DNA from: Ascidiella aspersa
Taxonomy: Eukaryota
NCBI GenBank assembly: GCA_963924565.1
Contig: OZ004615.1
Location: 16,058,001 to 16,122,000 of the forward strand
Length of the DNA stretch: 64,000 bases
Reading direction: 5' to 3'
A model generated the notes under the pieces. It did no database searches and was not told the DNA's origin. It saw only the letters and a program-made list of their open reading frames with translations. The position numbers and the translations under genes are program-made. Below are positions 1 through 30,700 of this stretch, piece after piece. Each line of letters starts with the position of its first letter. The first letter of the stretch is position 1.

Positions 1-1582
1 GCATCATGTTTTTACATATTTAAACTACTTAATGGCAAATATTTCAATATGTCCAACCGTTTTAGGATATCTTTTCAGCAAAAGTCTCATGGAAGTTCAA
101 AACCAAAAAAAGTTTCGTGCGGATGTTTTTCGTGTTTCTAATATAAAAATGACATCGAGAGTATACTTAATTACATTTTTTTAACTTGAAACTAGACTAT
201 CGACAAAATTATCGCGCTCTAACTATTTTGCTACCCTTTCACGTTAATAAATAACACCTTTGTAATGTGGCTTAAATTAAGTGTAAATAACAAATTTTTG
301 TAATGTGGAATAATAAACTATAATATCAAACGTATAATTTTAGCACAAGAAACACCACGTAATATTTTATGCCCTTAACTTTACGTGATAGGCTTTTGCG
401 CCCTATACTTCGGTATATATTTATTCCTAATTTGAGTCGCAAATTTGGGACGGGACCTATTTTATGACTTCGCGCTTTGACCAATTTGTGTTGTCATCCT
501 AAATTAACTTGGGCAATATTTCGATTGTGGGCGATTTTTGGCAGACCTTTTTTGTAAATATTGTTTAAAACCTTGGTCGCAAAAATTACTTTCGTAAAAA
601 ATATTTAGCTTGCTCGATTAGCCAATTTGTGGATTTGAATTTAAATTATGTTTGCCCTGGCCGAGGAGTAGGTCAATGACATTGGTAAACAGAGATGTCA
701 CAATTGTGCAAAAGGCGCATCTGGAAAGCGGTAATTAAGTCTAACAAGTTCGAAGTGGTTCGCAAGAACTTTTTTACCTAAAATATAAAAATGTACATTG
801 CATACAATGCCTTTTACTGCCTTTATACTTTAAGGTAACATGTCAGATAGGCGAAAAAAACAGTTAGGCACAGAGTCAATTTACGGCATATCGTGACTTC
901 CCCCGTTTAAAACGAAGACGTTCGTTGGTTGTTTGGTTAATAAGTAGCTTGTTGTTTGCGTTTATGAAATATGATACGGCCCTGATGTGAAAGGCTTTGC
1001 TAAATGTATTTCAATCACGAAGCGAAACACAGATAAAGACCTGATAAACTAGCGGCTCTATACGCTTTTAGTTGAGCTGTTTTAGCCGAAAACGAAGACG
1101 AAGTTGTTAGTTATAGCAGCATATTCCTCGGCGAATAAGACATTGCTGAATTATAATCGTATATATTACGTTAAATATCTGTTGAATAACTGCCATGTAT
1201 ATACAATGAGTCTGTTTATTAAACAAGGAATAAATATCAAGCATGAAAAGATTTTCGAATAAATAATTTTATGAATGCAAAATCAACAAAGCAACCAGGT
1301 TAATAAGGCAAAAGAATCGACCCTAAATATATTTTTTACTTTGTTCAACCAAAAACAACTATTAGGTGGAATATTGGGTCCCATGGTATTTATAGTTAAG
1401 AAATAAAGGAGAGTATATTGGTAATTTACATTAATGTTGCACTAATATTTGCTATGGCGTATAGTATATTTGTATGTTAATATATCTTATTATAAAAGGT
1501 TTTAAGTATTTTGTTTGTATCGGCCGAATGTTCAGGTGATCTCTCGTAACGATTTTCGTAGTCGTTTAAAGTCAAGTTCGAA

Positions 1583-4500
1583 ATGAATTTTAAGTTTCTC
1601 ACAGTCCTGCTTCTACTGATCTTAGTTTGCTCCCTGCTGTTTGAGATCGGAGATGCGGGAGACGACGAGAAATTGGGAAAGAAAAAGAATAGAAAGAAGA
1701 GAAAGGGAAGGAGGAAAGGAGGACGCAAGAGGAAGAACAAGACAAGCACCACTGCAGCAATAAATGTAACTCTTCCACTTGTCACAACCGTTATGCCAGA
1801 TATCTCAACAATAGTCTCGACCAAAGCCAAGATGACTACCTCAACCACCACAACAACAGGAACATCCGCGATTTCTTTGTTTCCAGCAATCGACCCTCCC
1901 ACATCCTCCGGTTCTTCAGAAGGAGACGTGCCCGACGTTTCCAGCAAAGGCCTTCTCTCACTCTTCGACTACATGTTTGGTGGCGCCGGCGACGACAACT
2001 CAACGTACGACGATGGATATGACTACGAGACCACAACCGCTGCCACGGAAGACGACTACGACGACGGTGGAGATGCTTCCTCGGCCGCAGAAGTTAGACA
2101 GGTAATGATCAATGGTAAGGTGGTTCCAATTTGCATTGAAGAACCAGTCAAGGCTCGATTCAAGGGTTATGTGAACAGCGGAGACGTCAGCCTTTGGGAC
2201 GCTTTGAACATCGCCAAGCCTGACTTGTCAAAGAGACAGAAAATCGAAATGATGAATAGCACTCTAAACGATGCAGGACTGCCGCCGATCGCTGCTTGCA
2301 CTCTGGAATCTGAACTGGACGACAATTTAGTGTCGTGCGATTTGGAGGCTGTTGCCGAATACATGATGAAATACGCCAAAGCCGGCACGCTGTCGATCGC
2401 TAGGTTTCACGCTCTAATGAAGAGCAACACAAGTGAGGCAGCAAAATTAAACGCCTCGCAGCAGATCATGGTCGACGAGGAGCTGCCCAAAATTCTGCCG
2501 TGCCTCAAAACGCCCGGAAAGGTACCGCAAAGAACGGTGGCGCTGAAATGTGATGCCGAAACCATAAAAAAAGCTTTGTTAGGGTATGTTACACGCGGAG
2601 AACTGGCGTCGACTATTCTGCTCGAACTGGCTTCCCCCGATCTAACGCCAATCGACAAGTTGAAATTAATCAATGTCGCACTGGGTGAGGCAAATTTGCC
2701 CATAATAGTTTGCACTAAAAGCGATTCAACTCTGCCAGAAACAACTACGGCGCTTGGTGGAACTGCATCTCGTATTCGAGCTACATCCCGTCCCGCTGTT
2801 CATTCAATCGCCTGTAACCCAGATTCAATCAGGGCTCTGGTTATTTCACATATTGCCAATTCCGCTTTACCGAAGTCTTTGATTCCTTCTCTTACAAATA
2901 AGAACAAATCGCTGCCAGAAAAATTGCGGATAATCAACAACGCACTACTAGAGAGCGGGCGTCCAAAAATCGTTTGCTCTGACGATGATACAAAAGTCAC
3001 AACTGTACCAACAGTCCATCCGATTCAGTGCGACCCAGAAGCCTTGCGGAAACTTGTAATTTCCTACATTAAAAATGGAATATTAACGGATGGGACGCTT
3101 ATCGGTAAACTGACCAATCAAACTTGGGCGCTATCAGAAAAGTTGAGCGTCGTTAACCGCGTGTTAGAAGAGAAGGGACTGCCGCCTCTTGCGTGTATAA
3201 CTGAGGAAACACAGTTGACAACTGTGGCAGCAATTATTTGTGACGAGGATAGCATAAGGACTCTTGTTATCTCTTACATTAAAGATGAAATTTTGCCGGG
3301 AACCATAATCGGTCAACTCATGGTTCCCGATTTGTCGCCGGCAGATAAACTTGCCACGATTAACAACGCTTTAGAGATGAAGGGTTTGCCTTCCATAGTT
3401 TGTGCTCAAAACCTGGTTGAATCAACAACACATTCTCCTCCTTCTTCGCAGCAAATAAGCTGCGACCCAGAATCAATTAAAGCATTGGTTACCTCTTACA
3501 TGAAGAATGGCGATCTTCCTTATTCGCTGATAGGTTCCCTCACAGATCCTGAAATATCGCAGGCGGATAAATTGGACACAATTAACGAAAGCCTATTGGG
3601 GGCAGGGTTGGCACCTATCGAATGCTCTTCAGCCGAATCGGAGATGGATCCCGGGTCCCATGGCCATACGCCGGGTTGCTCTCTTCCGCTAAACACAACC
3701 GATCACGGCTCAATTTTGGCATTTGCCATTCAGCTGGAAGAAGACGGAAAAATACCGGAAGGCACATACCTCCGAGTGACTAACGGCGACCTGAAAATGG
3801 AAGAGCTCTTGGCGACGCTCAGTGACGCTCACTGCGCTAAAGCGAAAGGTCCCAATCTCGGCGGATCAGTTGGTGGAAAAGACCTTGAGGTAAATCCATA
3901 CGTTGTTCGTATTGCATGTAGCTGTAAAGTTTCCATAAAGGTTGAGTTTCGATGTATAAACCAGGGGTTGGCAACCTACGGCCCGCAAATGCAATTCATG
4001 CGGCCCGACACCTCTTTAAAAATCTTGGAACCAAGCCGTTCCCCATGTTTTCAGTCTATTTTAACTACGTAAATGTTTCCTTGTCTATTGTTTATCCTTT
4101 TCCTTTTCTATTTTAACTACGTAAACAAAACCAAAATTACTGAAATACACGTTTGAACAAAGAATCACTAAAAATTGAGTTTTGTTCAGGCCCCCCTAAT
4201 GAAACGATACAGTGCCGACAGCCTGACACGTACATTACAATTTTGATTTTTGATTTTTTCATATTTTATATATTTTTTTTAATCGGAACCATATAAGCAA
4301 ATTAAATTAGGTAAGGCGAAAAGCCTCGCACGTAGTTTTAAAGTCATTCGAGCACGACTGTATTGTTGACATCACCATGCTTTATGCAGCAACTAAATAA
4401 GCTGATGGCGATTATCGATGCCGGCTACCTACCTCCTGACACATTGACAAAGCTCGCTCTGGGAGAGATCTCACAGGAGTGGTTGCGCGCCAACTTGTCC

Positions 4501-7500
4501 AAGAACGAGGATTATATCCTCTCGCAACTTCCGGCTCCGATCGCTAAACTGATAAGGGACGGCGACATGCCACCCGAGATCGTGGCGGCCATCTTCGGAG
4601 GAACAAAGAACAAAACTGAAATCATCCAGATGTTGGTCGAAGATGACGATCTGATCCGTAAGCTTCTTCCACCCCAGATTCTTCTTATGCTTGGGGTGAG
4701 TTTTACGCGCTTGTCTTTTTCATCTGCTTCGGAAATATTAAGCTAAGCGTTGATTGAGATAGGTGTAATCTAACTGGAATAATTTAAAAAATAAGTGTAC
4801 TTCAGTAATGTTTGCTTCTTCACCTCATATTGACCAATTTTTTGTAAAACGAACAGTATTTGCGGGCCAGCAATATTCTGAATGATATGCTGTATGTCGT
4901 GTTACTGTTATAAACGTTGATACAATTTGTTCGCTCTTACAACTTTTAAATTTGAAAACTTTGTGAACAGCTCATGATTTTTTTACATTTTGGTCAAATA
5001 TCAACATAATAAAAAAGTATAGAATCGATAGAAAAGCCAAAACAAATGTACGTACATTTTGAAATACTTGTACGTACATTTTGAATATTTTGTTTATTTT
5101 TATACCTTAGACAAAATCCGATTAAATTTTGCATAATTGTCATTGTTAACCTGACATGATTACAATGCCCCAAAATCAAAAACATCAAGGACCCTTCGTT
5201 TAAAAAATCAAAAACATCAACGACCTTAGTTTTATCACAAAGGAAACCTTCGTTTTATCACAAAAATAAACGTTGATACAATTTGTTCGCTCTTACAACT
5301 TTTAAATTTGAAAACTTTGTGAACAGCTCATGATTTTTTTACATTTTGGTCAAATATCAACATAATAAAAAAGTATAGAATCGATAGAAAAGCCAAAACG
5401 AATGTATGTACATTTTGAAATACTTGTACGTACATTTTGAATATTTTGTTTATTTTTATACCTTAGACAAAATCCGATTAAACTTTGCTTAATTGTCATT
5501 ATTAATCTGACATGATTACAATGCCCAAAAATCAAAAACATCAAGGACCCTTCGTTTAAAAAATCAAAAACATCAAGGACCTTCGTTTTATCACAAAGGA
5601 AAAACCTGTTCCCGATGAGCTCAAAGAACTGATGGTCAGCGGAAAGAACGCAACTGAAATCCGGGAAGAAGTGCAGAACGACGATGATCTCCTGCAGAAG
5701 TTAATGAGTCCCTCCTCCTACTTCTTCTACAACCTCTTTCAGAGTCAGATGAATCGCAACATTAACTCCGCCATCAGTATTTGCGTTATCGTGGTTCTCA
5801 CATTCGTGATGATATCCTTGGGTAAGAAAACAATGAAAGGAGAAATGCTTGACAGTATGCTGGCAAGTTTTGTCCCAGTGTCTATATATAACGTTACCAT
5901 CCCCGAAATAAAAGGCGACCCAGGCAAGACCTTTGAGAAGATTTCTTTTTAGTGTCAGTTTAATATTCGCCTATAATTTGTTTTGTGTATTTCAATGCAT
6001 TTTTATTCCTCACTACGGTAGCCTTTATGTGGGACATAACGGAGCAAATAATAATAAAATAGAACTGATTTTCCACAGAAACAACAAAGTTTTGAATTTA
6101 AATTAAATAGCGTGGTTTGATGAACTTTAAATAAAGTTATGTAGTTGTTTTAACAAATCTTGATAGAGTTATTTATTTGTTATGTAACTATACTTTTCTC
6201 AAACTATTTTTATATCTATCTATAAAGAAAGAAAACGTAAAATGTTTCAATTTGCATGATTTTAAGCGTACCAGCAGTTATAAAACAACTTTGGTTTTAA
6301 AGTCACACCAAGCTTATTCTGTCCAGGTTGCACAATGACAGTGGATAAAATAGCCGAACACGCCAAAGCGCCAAAGGGTGTGGTGATCGCGTTGTTTGCA
6401 CAGTTCGTCATCATGCCGGCGTCGGCGTTCGGTCTGACCCAAGCGTTTGACCTTGATACCTACTCTGCCATTTCGGTGCTGATTTGCGGATGTTGTCCTG
6501 GAGGCAACCTCTCCAACATGCTCGCCTACGCCTTAAACGGAGACATGAACCTTAGGTATATTATAAGTATTTGCTGGTTAGTCAGCATGTATTGGTTTCC
6601 CCTTGCATCTAAGATATTTTTCCAGGATAAATCATCAATCCACTATTGAAAATGCTTTCAGAGAATAACTTAAGTAAAAACTTAGCAGTTATTCTTGTGT
6701 ACATTCGGTCGTTATGTTCGCTTGTCTTACCGATATTCGTGGTACAATGCAAATGGAATCAATTAAGATATCTAGCTACATCAGGTAGTATTAAACAAAA
6801 CGTTTACCACTCACAGAAAAGTGTAAGGGTATTTAACACAAAAGTTATTTTAAAACTTTCTTTGGTTAAATAAACCAGTTATTTTTAGTTTTTATGTGAA
6901 AAAAAAACATTTCAGCTAAATGGCCGGAATCCTCGATCGGTTGATTTAAAAGTTTACACACAATCATTCATTAAATCTGTAGCATCCTGATGACGACTTG
7001 CTCGTCAATAATCGGACTCGGAATGATGCCGTTTTCGCTCTGGCTCTATTCGCGGTTTATAATTCCCCTCGACAGCGGAGTGATACCGTTCGAAAAGATC
7101 ATCCTGAACATCGCCCTAACTGTGCTTCCGGTGGGCATCGGAATAGCAATACGTCACTTCCGGCCGACGTGGGTCACCAACGTCATGAGGGTGTGTTTTA
7201 TTACTGTGTTGGATATCAATGTACTTTAATGACATTTTTAATCCGAAACTTGGGAGTGATTTGCACTAGCACAAGTAAGTAAAATAATTGAGTTTTCAAG
7301 ACCTGGACATAAAGGTATGCACGCAATACCACGCGTAAATCTGTACACAAACAAGCGCCACTAATGACTAACATATTTTGTACTAACTCGTGTTTGATAT
7401 TCGAAAGATTAAATTTTAAACTGTTTCTCACTTGCGATTTTAAATGGTAATAACAGTTTATCTTCTATTAGGTTTTAACTGAACTAATTGTTAAATTTAA

Positions 7501-10469
7501 TGCCAACGTGGAAGAGCTTAAGTGATATATGAACTGCAGAATTGTGAGTTACAGAAGATTCAATTTTATGTAGCACGACATGTTTAAAGCCTTAAAAAAC
7601 TAACAACAAGAACAACAGCAGCAATATAGAATGCTACAATTTTCGTTCATTGTGGTTCAACACTTCTCTTCTGAACTCACTTCGATGGCGTTATAAACCC
7701 TGTTTGCTTTAATTGCGTCACACGTTTCGCGATATTTTGCAGTTTGGAGCCGCGATGTTGGTTTGCTGTACGATCACGGTGGCGGTGTTGGCCGGGATTA
7801 TGTTGGGCGATTCCTTCTTCCTCTTCTTCAACCTCAAGGTGCTGGCCTGCTGCGCGATTCTGCCCATGGCCGGATACGTTCTTGGCTACACGTTTGCCTT
7901 TGTCGCAAGAGAAACGCCCAAGTGCAGGTGCGTGCTGAATCCAACTCAACCACGTGCGCTAGCATTTATCTACAATATGTTTGCATTATAAAAGTCGGAT
8001 TTGTGATGTATATCAACCGATCATGTTGCCGTACTTAAACATGGCCAAATATATACCACTGCTATTTAAATAGTTTTAAAAGCCCGTTTAAAAAGTTGCT
8101 ATAGGCGGATATATTATCTCCATAGGAAGCGTCGACTAAAAGCACTGACTTTATTACCGTTTATATATACAAACTTGTTGATATAGGAACTCAATTTGAT
8201 AAGAGCCAATGTTTCTTTTTCAATATTACTTAAGATTCGAAAACATGTAAACCTATAAACAAATGTTTGAAACAAATTATTCAGTATTTTGCCGAAATAT
8301 TGTGCATATTAATATATTCCCATATCATATCCACTGTATAGGCGCACGATATGCGTTGAGACCGGATGCCAAAACGTCCAACTGTGCTCCACTGTTCTCA
8401 AATTGGCATTCGACCCGATTCTTGTTGGGGTGCTCTTCTTAATGCCGCTGGTTTATATGGCTTTCCAGGTAAGATTCAACATCTACATTGTTTACTTTTG
8501 TGTAGTAGCTTAAGGTTGTGGTAAAAATAGTAACCGCTAGGTCAGTGGTCGGCAAACTGTGGACCGCGGCCCAAATGTGGGCCACGGAGCCATTTGTAGT
8601 GGGCCGCGGTCTATTGTATTAAATTTTAAAAATTAGTGAGTGTGGCGTAACTTTGTGAAGTCGTTCGAGAAATGAGCATGCCCCAGACCTAACAAAAGTC
8701 CATGATTCTCCTCTGTTGTCGTTGTGGTTTTACGCTATGGGCCTTTAATAGCTCTGGAAACAGTATTTTGGGTCGGTAAAAAAAAAGTTTGCCGAACACT
8801 GCTCTAGGTATTGTAAAAAAATATTAACTTGGTCGTGTGAAAAAAAGGTGTCAAAGATTGTAAAGTTTTATGTAAACAACTATCATTTGTTACAATACCA
8901 GGCTTTTCAATATTGTGTCGCAAAAAACTTGCGACACTTGTTTCAACCATGCTAAATAGAATTTTTCTTTATTTAAAGTTAACTTGAAAGAGGGATATGA
9001 CATAACATTTATTTTGTCGGATATTATATACAACGATATATAACAATTTATCCAGGGTCGTTTAACTTTGTATTTATAATTAAAAAATAGATTTTCCTAG
9101 AAGTGGTATAGCCAAGTCTGTTAGACATGGATTTAGTAGAAAACTGCATCTTGTTATAAAACCATGTTAAAGCGGATTGAACAAGATCTGATTCTACAAA
9201 CATAAGCGAGTTCTTGTAATATATATGTAAACCCGCAACTGTACACAGACTGTTGACCTGATTGAACATGCCCCTGTGTATGAACAAGCTTGTTTACCGA
9301 GCGTTGGCCCAGTTCGTTCGATAATATATTACTTGGTTTGGCGCTTGGAGTGTCAAAGTCATTCTAAAGCTGGGATATGGACAATACTGCCCCAAAACAC
9401 GAAATTAAAAAAAAAATATTTTTCTGGATAATCCAAAAAAAGTATTTACTTATTTTCTGGTGCATTATGTTTTTAAACCCAGAAATCAATGCACTATAGC
9501 TTTTCGTATGGGTTCACCAGTCTCAGGTGTAACCAAGCATTAAAACTAAAAATTGTCTTATAGTTTGTCGTTGTAAAAACAGACACCGTGCTCAATAAAA
9601 AGTTCAAAAACGAAACACAATATTACACATAGTAACAGTATAAACATCAACTCAAATCGTTAAGAAAGATTGAAGGCTATTATAAATTTGTAAGTTGAAT
9701 GCAAGGATTTTACATACCACACTTAACTGAATTTCAAACAACACAAAGTAAACTTCTAATGTGTTAATTAGAAAAACATATTTTCACGTTAAACCTGTTA
9801 CCAAACAGACCGCGGAGGCGTTTTTATTGATCTGCATATTCCGTCTCTACAATCGCTTAACCAACCCTCAGAAGCTAATCGAAGAAGACGGCGAAAGCGA
9901 AGAAAAAAAGAGACTGGACAGCGACCTTGGAAAAGGTAAGGAAAAGCATTATTGGCTCTGTGGACTAGAAGAAAACGCTCGTTTTTAAAGGTTTAACGGT
10001 ATGATGGGATGTAGTCTATTTTCGCTCTGTTCGACACAGAAAATTAGAAAATAAGAATAGCATCACAAAACGTGTGGGGAAATATAAAAAACAGCTAATT
10101 AAATATCAGCGTTGTATGTCATTATAAAATGACTTCTAAAGGCAATACCGTTATTTGGAAAAAGTCCAATGACATGGCTTGGTTTCGGCTTGTTGAAACA
10201 CTTGGACTGGGACTTTCTTTGTAGATAAACGAAGAAATAACCTTATCACTTATTTAGGTTCGCAGTTAAAGGATGAAGAAGGGAAGAAACACGACAACGG
10301 TGAAGCCGGTACGAAGCCAGCTGACGAAGAAGTGACCAATGGCAAGCTGGCAGAAGTCAAAAAAGATTCCGATGATAGCGACATTGTCGAGCTATGGCCT
10401 TTGAATAACACTCCTACGCCGGCCTACCTTGATTCTTTTAAGGCGGCTGGAACGGAAAACTACGTTTAA
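1583..10469 (+). CDS. SLC10 family (ASBT/NTCP-like) sodium:bile acid symporter with a very large repetitive N-terminal ectodomain, about 1307 aa
   Basis: Exons 1583-3889, 4390-4695, 5599-5821, 6327-6555, 6983-7190, 7743-7927, 8342-8468, 9809-9935 and 10258-10469 all have GT-AG boundaries, compatible phases and total 3924 nt. SLC10 signature segments: [76 protein letters not shown]. The N-terminus is a signal-peptide-like hydrophobic stretch. Joining exon 1 to the transporter exons is inferred from splice phase, not from transcript data. Confidence 0.88.
2132..3835 (+). repeat. Coding tandem array: 7 clear copies plus 1 divergent copy of a ~55-aa Cys-bracketed protein module
   Basis: Approximate consensus C-D-x-E-S-I-x-A-L-V-x-S-Y-I-K-x-G-x-L-P-x-S-L-I-G-x-L-T-x-P-D-L-S-x-x-D-K-L-x-x-I-N-x-A-L-x-x-x-G-L-P-x-I-x-C, visible in the 829-aa ORF translation, with Thr/Ser-rich linkers between copies. 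Confidence 0.9.
3962..4010 (+). mobile_element. 5' end fragment of a hAT-type MITE in SLC10 intron 1
   Basis: CAGGGGTTGGCAACCTACGGCCCGC matches the left end of the complete element at 51271 (CAGGGGTCGGCAACCTACGGCCCGC). No matching right end was found nearby. Confidence 0.65.
4910..5602. repeat. Recent tandem duplication with a 356-bp period in SLC10 intron 2, including the exon-3 splice acceptor
   Basis: Near-identical copies start at 4910 and 5266 (ATAAACGTTGATACAATTTG...). The twin antisense ORFs 4994-5188 and 5350-5544 are offset by 356 bp. Confidence 0.92.
8543..8801. mobile_element. hAT-type MITE in SLC10 intron 7
   Basis: TIRs CAGTGGTCGGCAAACT / AGTTTGCCGAACACTG; 8-bp TSD cgctaggt/ctctaggt (7 of 8 match). 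A right-end fragment of the same family lies at about 14510-14564. Confidence 0.85.
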
Positions 10470-12064
10470 ATCTAACAAACTGACATTGACTTTTTGGATT
10501 GGCCCTGGTGGCAATTTTATTACAGCCTGAAAGTTTTCTTCTCTTGTTTTTAAAAATTACAATATATAATAGCCTAAGCCCCAATGGAACCTACAGATTA
10601 TGCAGCTGCGAATTTTACGCATAATATTTGCTTTAAATTTCGATTCCGCTTCATGTTTACAAATTCAGTAAAACATTTTCTTTAGGACATGCAGACAGTC
10701 TCAACAGGGTTTTCAGGTTAGTCCTTTTATTTTGATTGACTGCCTATTTCGCTCTATGTTGTCGTTATTTCTTTATGTTGTTTTCAGAATTACACAAACT
10801 TTGTTTTTTGTACCGACAATCAATCCGCGCTATATATTTTAATCAAATGGATGCAGTAATTTGTTTTTTGCAATTAATACAGTTTGACCGAGAAACTTTG
10901 CTCTGGTAATTTGATACGCGTTATTCTTAATCAATAAATTACTACAAAAATGTATCTAACAAAGACTCAGTCGTGTAGTCAATAACTCAGTCGCGTAGTT
11001 GCAAATGACATAAACGATAGCTATCACAAATTTTTCCATTATAAGTATATTTTAGATAAAAGGGCGACAGGAAAAATATTATGCTCACTTTAAAACGAAT
11101 CACAAACAATGTTTTTCAAATATCTTAAAAATATATTGATCCAAACCCCAGCCTATAAAAAAGGTTTTAAAAACACTTGTTGCATGGGCGTGTCATGTAA
11201 TATTTCTTGTGTGTGTGTGTGTACATTACACATATATCCATGAAAATTTATTACATCTGAGCGAAACGTGTTAGGCTAAATGACAAAAAAGTGAAAATTT
11301 ACATTTTTAATGACTCAGTAAATGTTTAACTTTTATCGCAATAAATGTTTAGCAATATCCCAACTTTACAATATCATTTAAAACAAACGCATAACGAAAA
11401 ATGCCGGTGTAGTAAACCATTTTCAGCGGACAGTCGTCGTTAGGCTATACTTATATGATAGTCTCTATTTCGACGCTGCTAAAATTGCAAAAATAATGAT
11501 TTTCAATGGGGCAAAAAATAATTGGGCTGAAAATTATGATTTTGCATTCGTTGTATTCCATGTGTTTAAAAACTGGCCCCTAATCGCTAAACATATTTGG
11601 CTCCGTTTGTCCTTAGTATAAGACGCCGGTTGTTCATTGCAATAGTGTGGCGGAGCATTGTGCGCGACACAGTTCCATACCAGCAAGCGAGAGGTTTCGT
11701 GTTACTTGCAAATAGGAAGAAACTCATTTTCCAGGCAGAAAAAAATACTCTATTTCTATAAGAGACGAGCGTCTCAAGCGAGCGTTGTCGCAATACTCGT
11801 AAAATAGCCAAAACAAACTTTTTTTTTAATAGCCAAAACAAACTTTTAGCCAAAACAAACGTCGCGGGTCAAGCTTAATGGTTTCCGGTTAACGTCGCAA
11901 AATTTAGGCAGTGTTGCAAAGTGTCGCAAGTTTCAGCAGTTTTATAGCAAGTTTGAGCAGTAAGCATATTTGTTTATAAGCGATTTTTCTTACGTTTGAG
12001 GCAGTGTGGTGCCAAGATTACGTTAATAATAAGCAACTTGCACAATTGTTGCTTCAACTTAAGG

Positions 12065-27711: not shown

Positions 27712-30700
27712 CTAGTCCACCCAAGTATTCTTACGATTTACTGGTTTAACAGCGTCACTTGTATTTGAAGCGGGTGCGACTTCCTGAGTATGGTTGTTGC
27801 TTATCTGCGCAGATCGTCTTTTAGTAATTCGCCTTTTACGTGCTGCAGAGAACTTTTCCATTGGTGGAACAGGTTCTTTTGGAATTTTGGGAGTGATCGG
27901 TCGGATGTGTTGATCAACATTTACTGTGGATGACGACCTTTTTTGAAGTAAAAATGGAACTTCTAAGGTTTCACCTGTAGTTTTTATCGTTTTGTTACAT
28001 GGCTGAGCATATTGCCTGTTTTTCATAAGCCGTTTCCGTGCTTTAGATATATCGTCAACTAATATTGGAGTAGGTTCTTTTGATTTGTTAATGTGCGTTG
28101 TTGAGGGGGATTCATCTTTTTCAATTGGCACACGGATTTGTGAGTTTTCTGTTGACTTTTCTTTGTCTTGATTTGATTTCTGCAAAGTTTGTCGTTGTAA
28201 AATTCTCCTTTTTCGCGCTGCAGAAATCTCCTTGCTTTGCTTTGGTGGCGTCGGGACTTTGAATTTATTGATGATATTAGACTTGGTAGAACATTGCGCG
28301 TTTTTTATCGGCACAAGCAATGGTGTGTTCAATTTTGGAGCTTCTTTGTCTTGGTGCGATTTAGGCCAATTTTGACGTTGAAAAATTCTACCGTTTAGCA
28401 TTTCAGAACTATCTTTGCTTTGTTTTGGCGGCTTAGGTGCCTCGGAATGATTGATGATTTTATTCTCAGCGGAAGATTTGTCAATTTGATTTAGCACGGC
28501 ATTCTCCAAGTTCTCCAAAACTTTCCGCCCCTTGCTTACATTGTGCACAGCGGATTGTCGCTTGATGATTCTTCTTTCACGTGCCGCAGACAAACGTCCC
28601 GTCCTGCTTGGTGGAACAGGTTTTTTCGGCTTACTGCAGCTGTTTATTTCCTGATTCTCATATTGTTTTTCGGTTAAACGGTTTCCATCACACGGCTCTT
28701 CTTGCTTTAAAGCGACCATTGCCGCTTGTTTGCGTGTTAAAATTTTGTGATTAGCAGTATATAGGCCAGCTTCTAGCTGTTTTGTTGTTTGTGGTTTTAC
28801 TGTATTGACGTTTCTGCTCTTCGATATAGCATTCTTGTCTACCAGTGTTTTGTGATTTGGAATTGCGAAGCTTTCATCACTCCTGTTGTCACGGATTTCA
28901 ATTGGGATCCAACACTTGGAATCGAACGTATGCTTTTTTAAGACCGATGATTCTTTATCTGTGTTGTAAAAAATATTTCAAATTCAAACAAAAAAAATAC
29001 ATACATTGATATACACTTATGAATATTTTAATCAATTTGTGAATAATTAAACTGAATGCCGGTTTACAAACGACAAGATTTATTCGACTAACTTGATTTA
29101 TTCAGAAATTTGTTTAATTGACAATTTTTTTCACAAAAACGACAGATGATATGTGTATGTCAGTGACTCTTAATTCATTGGGTAATATAGGTACACCCTA
29201 TTTTTGGCTCTGAAGACTTTGTGCCCCCTGTTTACGTATTAAAATACGTCACACAAAACAAATAATTAGGTTAAAAAACGCAGTGGCACCTGGATGCTTT
29301 GGGTATTTTTCTTTAATTTGTACAACTTTCTGTTTGAACTCGTCGTGTTTTAGGGTAGCTGGGACAAGTGGAACAACACAGGGCCCTAATAAATAAAATT
29401 AATTGCATTATAAAATAAAACAGACTTCTTTATATCTTCATGTTGCGTGCATCAATCAAATATTATTTTTTTAAACAAAATAAACTTGAATTGCAAATGT
29501 TAACACGTACCGATTATAGGTGAGTGTCGTTTGTTGAACAATCGCAAAGGTTGCTCTTTGACTATGTTTTTAGCGTTCGGTAACTTTTGGCTTTTAGATG
29601 AGTGCTGATGGTTACTATCCACAGCTTGCCCTATCAAAACAAAATTCGTTAAAAATTGGTCATATACTTACGTTGTTATACAAAAAACAGGCCCACCGTT
29701 ATCATGGCAAAGTTTTGATCTTGTTTGTATGTTGTTTAGCTTTTGCATGTCTTTTCGAGCAAAATTCTGTAAAGGTAAATAAAAGTAGGTGTTATCAAAC
29801 GAAAATACAGAAAATAGAAAAATAATAAGATTTTAACAAACGAGACAAAAATTGAAACCACCTTAAACAACTTTGCTTGGCTGTTAATCTTATCATTCAT
29901 GTTGGTCTGAACATTGGCGCTCTAAGAAAGAAGAAAATACTGAATACCAACAAAGTCACAAATATTAGTAGCTATGTGTTACCTTTGGTTGATGTACACT
30001 TGGAGTTCTAGCCTTGATTTTTGTCGGACACGGCCCATAAGGTCGACACTATAAAAAAATGGTTGATTAGAACGGATGCAAACAATTAAGTCAAAGTTAT
30101 TTTCTGGCGAATTACTGACATGCTCTAATTGAAGGTCATCAATTAAAAGTTCGTAGGATTCGCTTGGACATTTCGGAAGTGGTCGATATATTTCTGTTGT
30201 AGGATTGGTGGGGTTTTTAGAAGAATTGTGATTTTTGCTCTGAGGATTTTCACTTCCTCCTTTGGCTGAAAGTAAAATTAGAAACATTAAATCCGTTTTT
30301 TTATTAATTTTGTGATACTTAACTGAGCGACGAGGTTTGGTGGAAACCACAGATCTGAGATAGAGACACAACGAACATAGTGATTGGCATTCTGTCGATG
30401 TGAAATCTGTCGATCTCAGACGCAGAATACCAAGTGTAGTATCAACAAACAACGGGAAATCAAGCCTTGATACAACACCAAAAACATAACAATTAGAATA
30501 TTATAGTAAAGCATACACTACCCACTGCTGTCAAACACTTACAAACAACTTTTTCAAAACGATTAGATTTATTCTCTGAAATATATTAATCAAAAACTAA
30601 AATTACAAATGGCTTTGCGTGTATATTTACATCTATTGTTCGGCGTTTACCTGTTACAGAGATCTTATCTGCTTCAATTGATTTTTTTTCTTTCAGTTTC

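Follow-up and report, generated by a model that had tools for sequence, protein, structure and literature searches.

The DNA analysed here is a 64,000-nucleotide stretch of the sea squirt Ascidiella aspersa (GenBank assembly GCA_963924565.1, contig OZ004615.1, positions 16,058,001 to 16,122,000 of the forward strand), referred to below as the window. Close to its start lies what is probably a single tunicate gene, encoding a predicted transporter of 1307 amino acids (aa) that belongs to the NTCP/ASBT type of the SLC10 family and carries an extracellular N-terminus of ~925 aa. The protein would be an SLC10 transporter with an unprecedented modular ectodomain that includes a new small extracellular module, the fusion of the two parts being predicted from sequence. 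To our knowledge, all described SLC10 members have short or modest N-termini.

The program-made list of open reading frames (ORFs) gives an 829-codon ORF at 1583-4072 and smaller ORFs downstream. A nine-exon chain, assembled with a script on the window, has AG/GT at all junctions, compatible phases, and one continuous reading frame, 1307 codons long, that is closed by a stop codon (TAA, 10467-10469). An initial annotation of this DNA had claimed phase-compatible splicing from a 769-codon first exon into a product of about 1307 aa, and the GT-AG sites, phases, and codon count bear this out. The joined 1307-aa protein was used for checks of frame, hydropathy, cysteines, and sequons, and all database and fold searches were run exon by exon. 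The exons have a GC content of 0.46-0.56, compared with 0.29-0.36 for the introns, and the exon-1 ATG at 1583 has an A at -3. The parts of the model, with transmembrane segments abbreviated TM, are as follows.

1491..1498, plus strand: TATA-like TATAAAAG, ~85 nucleotides (nt) 5' of the exon-1 ATG; weak consensus evidence, read from the sequence
1583..3889, plus strand: exon 1, 769 codons, ending in phase 0 at GAG/GTAAAT
3890..4389, plus strand: intron 1, 500 nt, GC 0.36
4390..4695, plus strand: exon 2, 102 codons, phase 0/0; cysteine-free all-helical region with two conserved sequons
5599..5821, plus strand: exon 3, the remaining juxtamembrane region (conserved NAT sequon, conserved Met at 5632) and TM1, ending in phase 1
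6327..6555, plus strand: exon 4, equivalent to NTCP 44-118, holding the Q68, S105, and N106 equivalents
6983..7190, plus strand: exon 5, equivalent to NTCP 120-187, holding the T123 equivalent
7743..7927, plus strand: exon 6, equivalent to NTCP 191-241 (E = 0.007, in-register alignment)
8342..8468, plus strand: exon 7, equivalent to NTCP 251/252-292/293, holding the E257 and Q261 equivalents
9809..9935, plus strand: exon 8, last TM helix and start of the cytoplasmic tail, placed by frame and splice sites only
10258..10469, plus strand: exon 9, acidic C-terminal tail and stop codon, placed by frame and splice sites only

Exons 8 and 9 are the least certain parts of the gene model. Exon 8 has no significant match among PDB sequences, and its likeness to the TM9 region of NTCP was seen by eye only. 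Rfam gave no match in positions 1-12000 of the window. Intron 2 contains a tandem duplication at 4910-5565, made up of two 300-nt copies that are 98% identical and start 356 nt apart.

The transporter core is recognized by both family and structure-derived sequences. Exons 4 and 5 match the Pfam SBF family (PF01758) with 75.3 and 39.6 bits, respectively, at a cut-off of 24.3, and searches against the sequences of solved structures align exons 4-7 collinearly and in register with NTCP up to approximately residue 293. The hydrophobic end of exon 3 joins exon 4 as ...SLG/CTM..., the same as in NTCP, and exon 3 is therefore taken to carry TM1. In all, the core corresponds to NTCP residues ~20-316 and is preceded by ~925 residues, compared with ~22 in NTCP. 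The loop after TM1 is positively charged, as it is in NTCP, which indicates that the N-terminus is on the outside (N-out).

Residues identical to NTCP Q68, S105, N106, T123, E257, and Q261, which we take to be Na+-site residues from the published NTCP and ASBT structures, are found in the motifs AQF (Q), NLSN (S and N), ILMT (T), and ETGCQN (E and Q). A split codon (AG/C) encodes the S of LSILMT, which was read from the DNA. The complete SLC10 core with Na+-site residues that had been claimed at the outset is thus upheld by the exon-by-exon NTCP alignment and by the SBF matches. Because all Na+-site residues and family motifs are intact, the core should transport, and judging from its sequence it is most likely still a Na+-dependent carrier of an amphipathic organic anion.

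The genome holds 20 SBF-positive exon matches, which were grouped into approximately ten loci. Two of these are SLC10 paralogues with N-tails of ~125-150 aa, each with its own signal peptide.

C3:19784820-19785356 of the genome (G000): SLC10 paralogue L002
C3:19359774-19360343 of the genome (L021 7774-8343): SLC10 paralogue L021

One paralogue is intronless, with a 463-codon open frame, a signal peptide, and a sequon-rich N-tail of ~150 aa (P3/P5-like), and in another a signal peptide is combined with a ~125-aa N-tail within the TM1 exon. The core motifs of the window gene look NTCP-like rather than like those of L002.

In the N-terminal extension, exon 1 begins with a signal-like start, continues through a polybasic run, a segment rich in serine and threonine (S/T), and an acidic segment rich in tyrosine, and then enters a series of cysteine-bracketed units.

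aa 1-26 of exon 1: signal-peptide-like hydrophobic start (hydrophobic stretch 1-27)
aa 29-53 of exon 1: polybasic stretch
aa 54-125 of exon 1: S/T-rich mucin-like segment
aa 126-170 of exon 1: acidic Tyr-rich segment
2132..3625, plus strand: seven clear Cys-bracketed units of 55-56 aa (R1-R7), with S/T/P-rich linkers between units
2132-2299, plus strand: R1
2336-2503, plus strand: R2
2549-2713, plus strand: R3
2813-2977, plus strand: R4
3029-3196, plus strand: R5
3239-3403, plus strand: R6
3461-3625, plus strand: R7
3677..3835 (aa 699-751), plus strand: R8, a degenerate eighth unit, Cys-bracketed, with a sequon, and conserved in the orthologue described below

The ectodomain has 16 cysteines, which account for the eight brackets, and 13 N-x-S/T sequons before TM1. 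The initial annotation had also claimed a signal peptide and many sequons, and the hydrophobic residues 1-27 together with these 13 sequons agree with it. Each unit follows a common pattern of ~55 aa between two cysteines, in which a hydrophobic helix leads through a G-x-L-P/S turn to a short and then a long helix, and the sequence closes with L-P-x-I/L-x-C. An AlphaFold2 model of R6, built on a 12-row alignment (A1), has a predicted local distance difference test score (pLDDT) of 86.8, with helices at 6-18, 25-30, and 37-50. Both ends of the model, and hence both cysteines, lie side by side. The AlphaFold2 model of exon 2 likewise has a pLDDT of 86.8 and consists of nine short helices.

Comparisons with known domains and folds returned nothing that could name the module. 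Pfam gave no match above cut-off for exons 1-3, neither SEA nor any other domain, and the sub-threshold 'Mucin' match (19 bits, cut-off 34.7) lies over the N-terminal S/T region. The module profile had no match among PDB sequences, Foldseek found nothing at E<=0.001 with the R6 and exon 2 models, and the ESM Atlas gave no usable match for the repeat region or exon 2. In a wide structural search with VIA-align, the best Z scores were 4.8 for R6 and 4.2 for exon 2, below the noise level of the tool. A death-fold identity (CARD/DED) was considered and rejected, since its Z scores of 4.1-4.7 are within the noise for helical models and the unit has three helices, not six. Rows for the plakin repeat of desmoplakin in the VIA-align search were also rejected as a family assignment, being below the noise level. 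As modeled, the Cys-bracketed three-helix module is previously undescribed, without family or fold assignment.

Relatives of the module are few. An exhaustive phmmer search of exon 1 against 1.84 billion protein representatives returned four proteins, denoted P0001-P0004 (E 2e-15 to 1e-3), none of which has a name or a Pfam domain above cut-off. P0001 is 601 aa long; P0002 has 305 aa and four units and ends directly after its last Cys; P0003 and P0004 each contain two units. Word-indexed protein searches found nothing with exon 1 or exon 2 as the query, and with P0002 they found P0012 as the only further relative. A hidden Markov model (HMM) built from the units scores R1-R7 at 77-90 bits each and the units of P0001, P0003, and P0004 at up to 51.5 bits. 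Searches of the genome with exon 1, with exon 2, and with the unit profile all lead back to this locus only.

Of these relatives, P0001 is encoded on two JGI metagenome contigs, L015 and L016. On L015, its ORF at 5959-7761 is followed by matches to exons 2-5 in the same order and on the same strand.

L015 10795-11097, same strand as the P0001 ORF: orthologue of exon 2, 53% identity
L015 15240-15461, same strand: orthologue of exon 3, 62% identity
L015 15875-16099, same strand: orthologue of exon 4, 83% identity
L015 16466-16675, same strand: orthologue of exon 5, 73% identity

The orthologous locus ends before exons 6-9, and the comparison covers exons 1-5. The acceptor and donor codons of exons 2-5, and their phases, are identical between L015 and the window. 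The P0001 ORF shares with exon 1 its start, signal peptide, polybasic run, and degenerate last unit, and over the first 29 aa the two are 55% identical. Soon after its last unit, the ORF has phase-0 donors, GAG/GTTTAC at 7699 and AGC/GTAAGT at 7717. The initial annotation had suggested looking for an orthologue with this architecture, and L015/L016 supply one with the same exon order and splice phases.

Divergence between the two species is deep. The proportion of differences at synonymous sites (pS) is 0.78-0.94, so that these sites are saturated, and the intron flanks are 27-38% identical. For exon 2, the corresponding nonsynonymous proportion (pN) is 0.30 against a pS of 0.78, and for exon 3 pN is 0.23. 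Because pN remains at 0.30 in exon 2 despite saturated pS, and because conservation begins exactly at the acceptor, exon 2 is read as a coding exon under purifying selection; it has no conserved start codon of its own. Three sequons are conserved in exons 2-3 (NLS, NKT/NKS, and NAT), and this Cys-free juxtamembrane region is the conserved part of the extension. The Cys-bracketed units behave differently. P0001 has only ~4 of them, compared with 8 in the window, and between species they are 26-28% identical, compared with 73-83% for exons 4 and 5 of the core. In its larger introns, the orthologue has no ORF of at least 80 aa with a recognized host-gene look. An ORF in its intron 1 (L015 10130-10537) resembles, by eye, a reverse transcriptase fragment of a retrotransposon without long terminal repeats (non-LTR). 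No conserved non-coding blocks were found upstream of exons 1, 2, and 3 between the two species, which has no bearing on promoters.

A long fusion transcript joining exon 1 to the transporter is quite likely to exist, and the main explanation to be weighed against it is that of two neighboring genes, which we consider unlikely. Exon 1 would then encode a secreted mucin-like repeat protein ending in the read-through tail of its ORF, the SLC10 gene would start at 4384 or 5632, and the match in phase would be due to chance. Several observations do weigh against a single gene. Profile methods do not connect the Cys units with exons 2-3 (HMM not significant; hhalign probability 1.1%). The others also count in favor of two genes. 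An in-frame ATG is found just 5' of the exon-2 acceptor in both species, at 4384-4386 of the window, two codons before the acceptor, and at 10780-10782 of L015, likewise in a short open stretch; by a rough estimate, the chance of such an ATG is ~10% per species. Exon 3 has a Met at the same alignment position in the two species (window 5632), and initiation at this Met would yield an N-tail of the usual NTCP-like kind. The proposed intron 1 contains an ATTAAA at 4301. The GC content of third codon positions (GC3) is 0.49 in exon 1, below the 0.57-0.75 of exons 2-8. Finally, free-standing secreted proteins built of the module occur elsewhere (P0002, P0012), so exon 1 could be a gene of its own.

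The junction itself argues the other way. A dispersed repeat at 3951-4076 (~115-125 nt), which makes up about a quarter of intron 1, supplies the stop codon of the exon-1 ORF and most of its read-through tail, and the tail in the orthologue is unrelated. The repeat gave 199 first-look candidates genome-wide (40 scored), ~75-80% identical and for the most part oppositely oriented. In both species the last unit is followed by a consensus donor in phase 0, and the conservation of exon 2 begins exactly at a good acceptor, whereas the ATGs before it are poorly placed, both having T at -3 (poor context). A start at 5632 alone is insufficient, because the conserved and purifying-selected exon 2 would then lack a gene.

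Topology offers a further argument. Even if the protein started at exon 2, its conserved sequons in exons 2-3 would suggest that an N-tail of ~157 aa is lumenal, and a tail so long normally needs a signal peptide. The only signal peptide of the model is in exon 1, and intron 1 has no signal-peptide-like ORF among the listed ORFs of at least 60 aa. A pair of genes would thus leave a glycosylated 157-aa tail without a signal peptide, though the long-tailed paralogues have one. The same-strand adjacency of the two parts has also been kept despite saturated synonymous sites, no other locus of the genome has the module, and just ~310 nt would lie between the stop at 4072 and the ATG at 4384. An operon with spliced-leader (SL) trans-splicing at the exon-2 acceptor was rejected, given that the orthologous interval is 3 kb and that the orthologous exon 2 has no in-frame Met before approximately codon 60, yet those codons are conserved as coding. 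It is quite possible that a shorter isoform, with an internal start just before exon 2 or inside exon 3, coexists with the long form.

There are weak signs that exon 2 consists of Cys-less copies of the Cys-bracketed module. Of 32 pairwise shuffle tests, 5 gave p < 0.01, which is marginal support. The first half of exon 2 can be aligned in register with R8 in the window and in the orthologue alike (shuffle p ~0.002 each, uncorrected for the 32 tests). The AlphaFold2 models of R6 and exon 2 have a similar helix pattern, and their weak structural neighbors overlap (4jqw_A, 6k8j_G, 4e9m_A, 9wz6_A, and 6n2p_A, among others).

For the single-gene protein, the following arrangement is proposed. The exon-1 signal peptide would carry the long N-tail across the membrane of the endoplasmic reticulum, where the tail would become heavily N- and O-glycosylated. 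Its outer part, composed of the polybasic, mucin-like, and acidic Tyr-rich segments and eight disulfide-closed three-helix beads on glycosylated linkers, may form an extended stalk. Extending into the glycocalyx or the extracellular matrix, such a stalk could position, retain, or shield the transporter there or serve in recognition, with no substrate binding. The conserved Cys-free helical region of exons 2-3 would sit on the outer face of the transporter, as the part most likely to influence it. Because the units evolve fast and differ in number, a role as spacer, in the glycocalyx, or in recognition suits them better than that of a conserved substrate site. The favored reading, over a ligand-capturing antenna, is accordingly a glycosylated stalk or an array for recognition, together with a conserved juxtamembrane domain that may touch the transporter.

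In the antenna alternative, which the initial annotation had put forward and which appears improbable, the two parts are truly fused, and a solute or signaling ligand is captured by the units or the juxtamembrane domain, which feed or gate the SLC10 core, as a transporter or transceptor. Consistent with capture are the tethering of several like modules to a transporter that has kept its Na+ sites and the conservation of the juxtamembrane domain beside the outer face of the core. A precedent in principle exists in GlnPQ and OpuA, bacterial ATP-binding cassette (ABC) importers with fused tandem substrate-binding domains. The likeness to them is one of concept only, namely binding modules fused to a transporter; GlnPQ and OpuA are of another transporter class and use the periplasmic-binding-protein fold, no example of which was found here. 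The low identity of the units and their differing number would be unusual for a site that serves a conserved substrate, no link in fold or family to a known binding domain was found, and the units are predicted to be small three-helix bundles. When the N-tail of SLC10A4 was grafted on NTCP, the NtSLC10A4-NTCP chimera kept taurocholate transport, so a long N-terminus is compatible with SLC10 transport and was without effect on it (PMC4472396). An animal secondary-active transporter with its own multivalent receptor array, or a transceptor or adhesion receptor linking contact with the matrix to transport, is a correspondingly slim prospect.

A still fainter chance is that the fused ectodomain is released or processed, the SLC10 part acting as a membrane precursor or anchor for a secreted product or being activated by cleavage; the polybasic run after the signal peptide has several sites of the R/K-x-K/R-R type, conserved in the orthologue, but it lies at the far N-terminus, where cutting would remove only ~25 residues, no dibasic site was seen by eye in aa 752-946, from the last unit to TM1, and the protease activation proposed for SLC10A4 was not reproduced (PMC4472396).

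The predicted protein may also be set beside known systems. With NTCP, ASBT, and SOAT (SLC10A1, A2, and A6), it shares the collinear SBF core, the Na+-site residues, and the implied N-out topology. Compared with solved NTCP, identity per exon is ~45-70%, as judged by eye from the alignments. Those carriers are ~350-380 aa long, with an N-tail of ~20-40 aa and no signal peptide, whereas the model has 1307 aa, an N-tail of ~925 aa with a signal peptide, and an acidic C-tail of ~100 aa. SLC10A3, SLC10A4, and SLC10A5 are alike in joining an SLC10 core to an extended and glycosylated extracellular N-terminus. Their N-tails are ~75-190 aa long and without repeated modules, and no sequence similarity was seen between them and exons 1-3. 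For SLC10A4, a long N-tail that is not made of repeated modules is documented (PMC4472396).

Outside the SLC10 family, the ectodomain resembles membrane-tethered mucins and beads-on-a-string glycoproteins in having a signal peptide, linkers rich in S/T, numerous sequons, and a series of small modules closed by disulfides. Membrane mucins differ in having a single TM anchor and often a SEA domain; the predicted protein is instead anchored by a transporter with nine TM helices and lacks SEA or any other Pfam domain in its ectodomain. Among invertebrate SLC10 proteins, the longest case found is CsSBAT of Clonorchis sinensis (546 aa), which also has unusual terminal extensions (PMC7746286). These are trematode-specific and disordered, ~200 aa in all (PMC7746286), and do not form a secreted-type modular ectodomain. 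The literature searched on SLC10 in invertebrates and ascidians and on long N-termini held nothing comparable. The initial annotation had held that the architecture is absent from described families, and nothing like it was found in Pfam, the PDB, the 1.84 billion protein representatives, or this literature.

Two further observations concern other genes. On the minus strand of the window, at 27712-28719, a 335-codon ORF contains approximately four copies of a proline-rich motif followed by basic motifs of the S-A-A-R-K/E-R-R-I-x-K-R-Q type, with no Pfam match. Elsewhere in the genome, at C5:19610700-19614090 (G000), cellulose-synthase (27.5 bits) and GH6 (28.1 bits) matches lie 3 kb apart on the same strand; they are barely above their cut-offs and look like a tunicate CesA-GH6 gene. 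Among animals, the union of cellulose synthase with a GH6 domain is a hallmark of tunicates, and the pair is in keeping with the sea-squirt origin of the genome.

SLC10 carriers are drug targets, and NTCP is a viral receptor. If the locus were two separate genes, it would consist of an ordinary SLC10 gene beside a lineage-restricted secreted repeat protein. If the predicted fusion is true, its ectodomain is more than twice the size of the remaining ~380 residues and is built from a module without family or fold, making the protein a natural experiment. It could show what such an appendage does to an elevator-type transporter, be it placement, shielding, gating, or ligand capture. The module would also define a new small extracellular domain family, present as well in free-standing secreted proteins of other eukaryotes.

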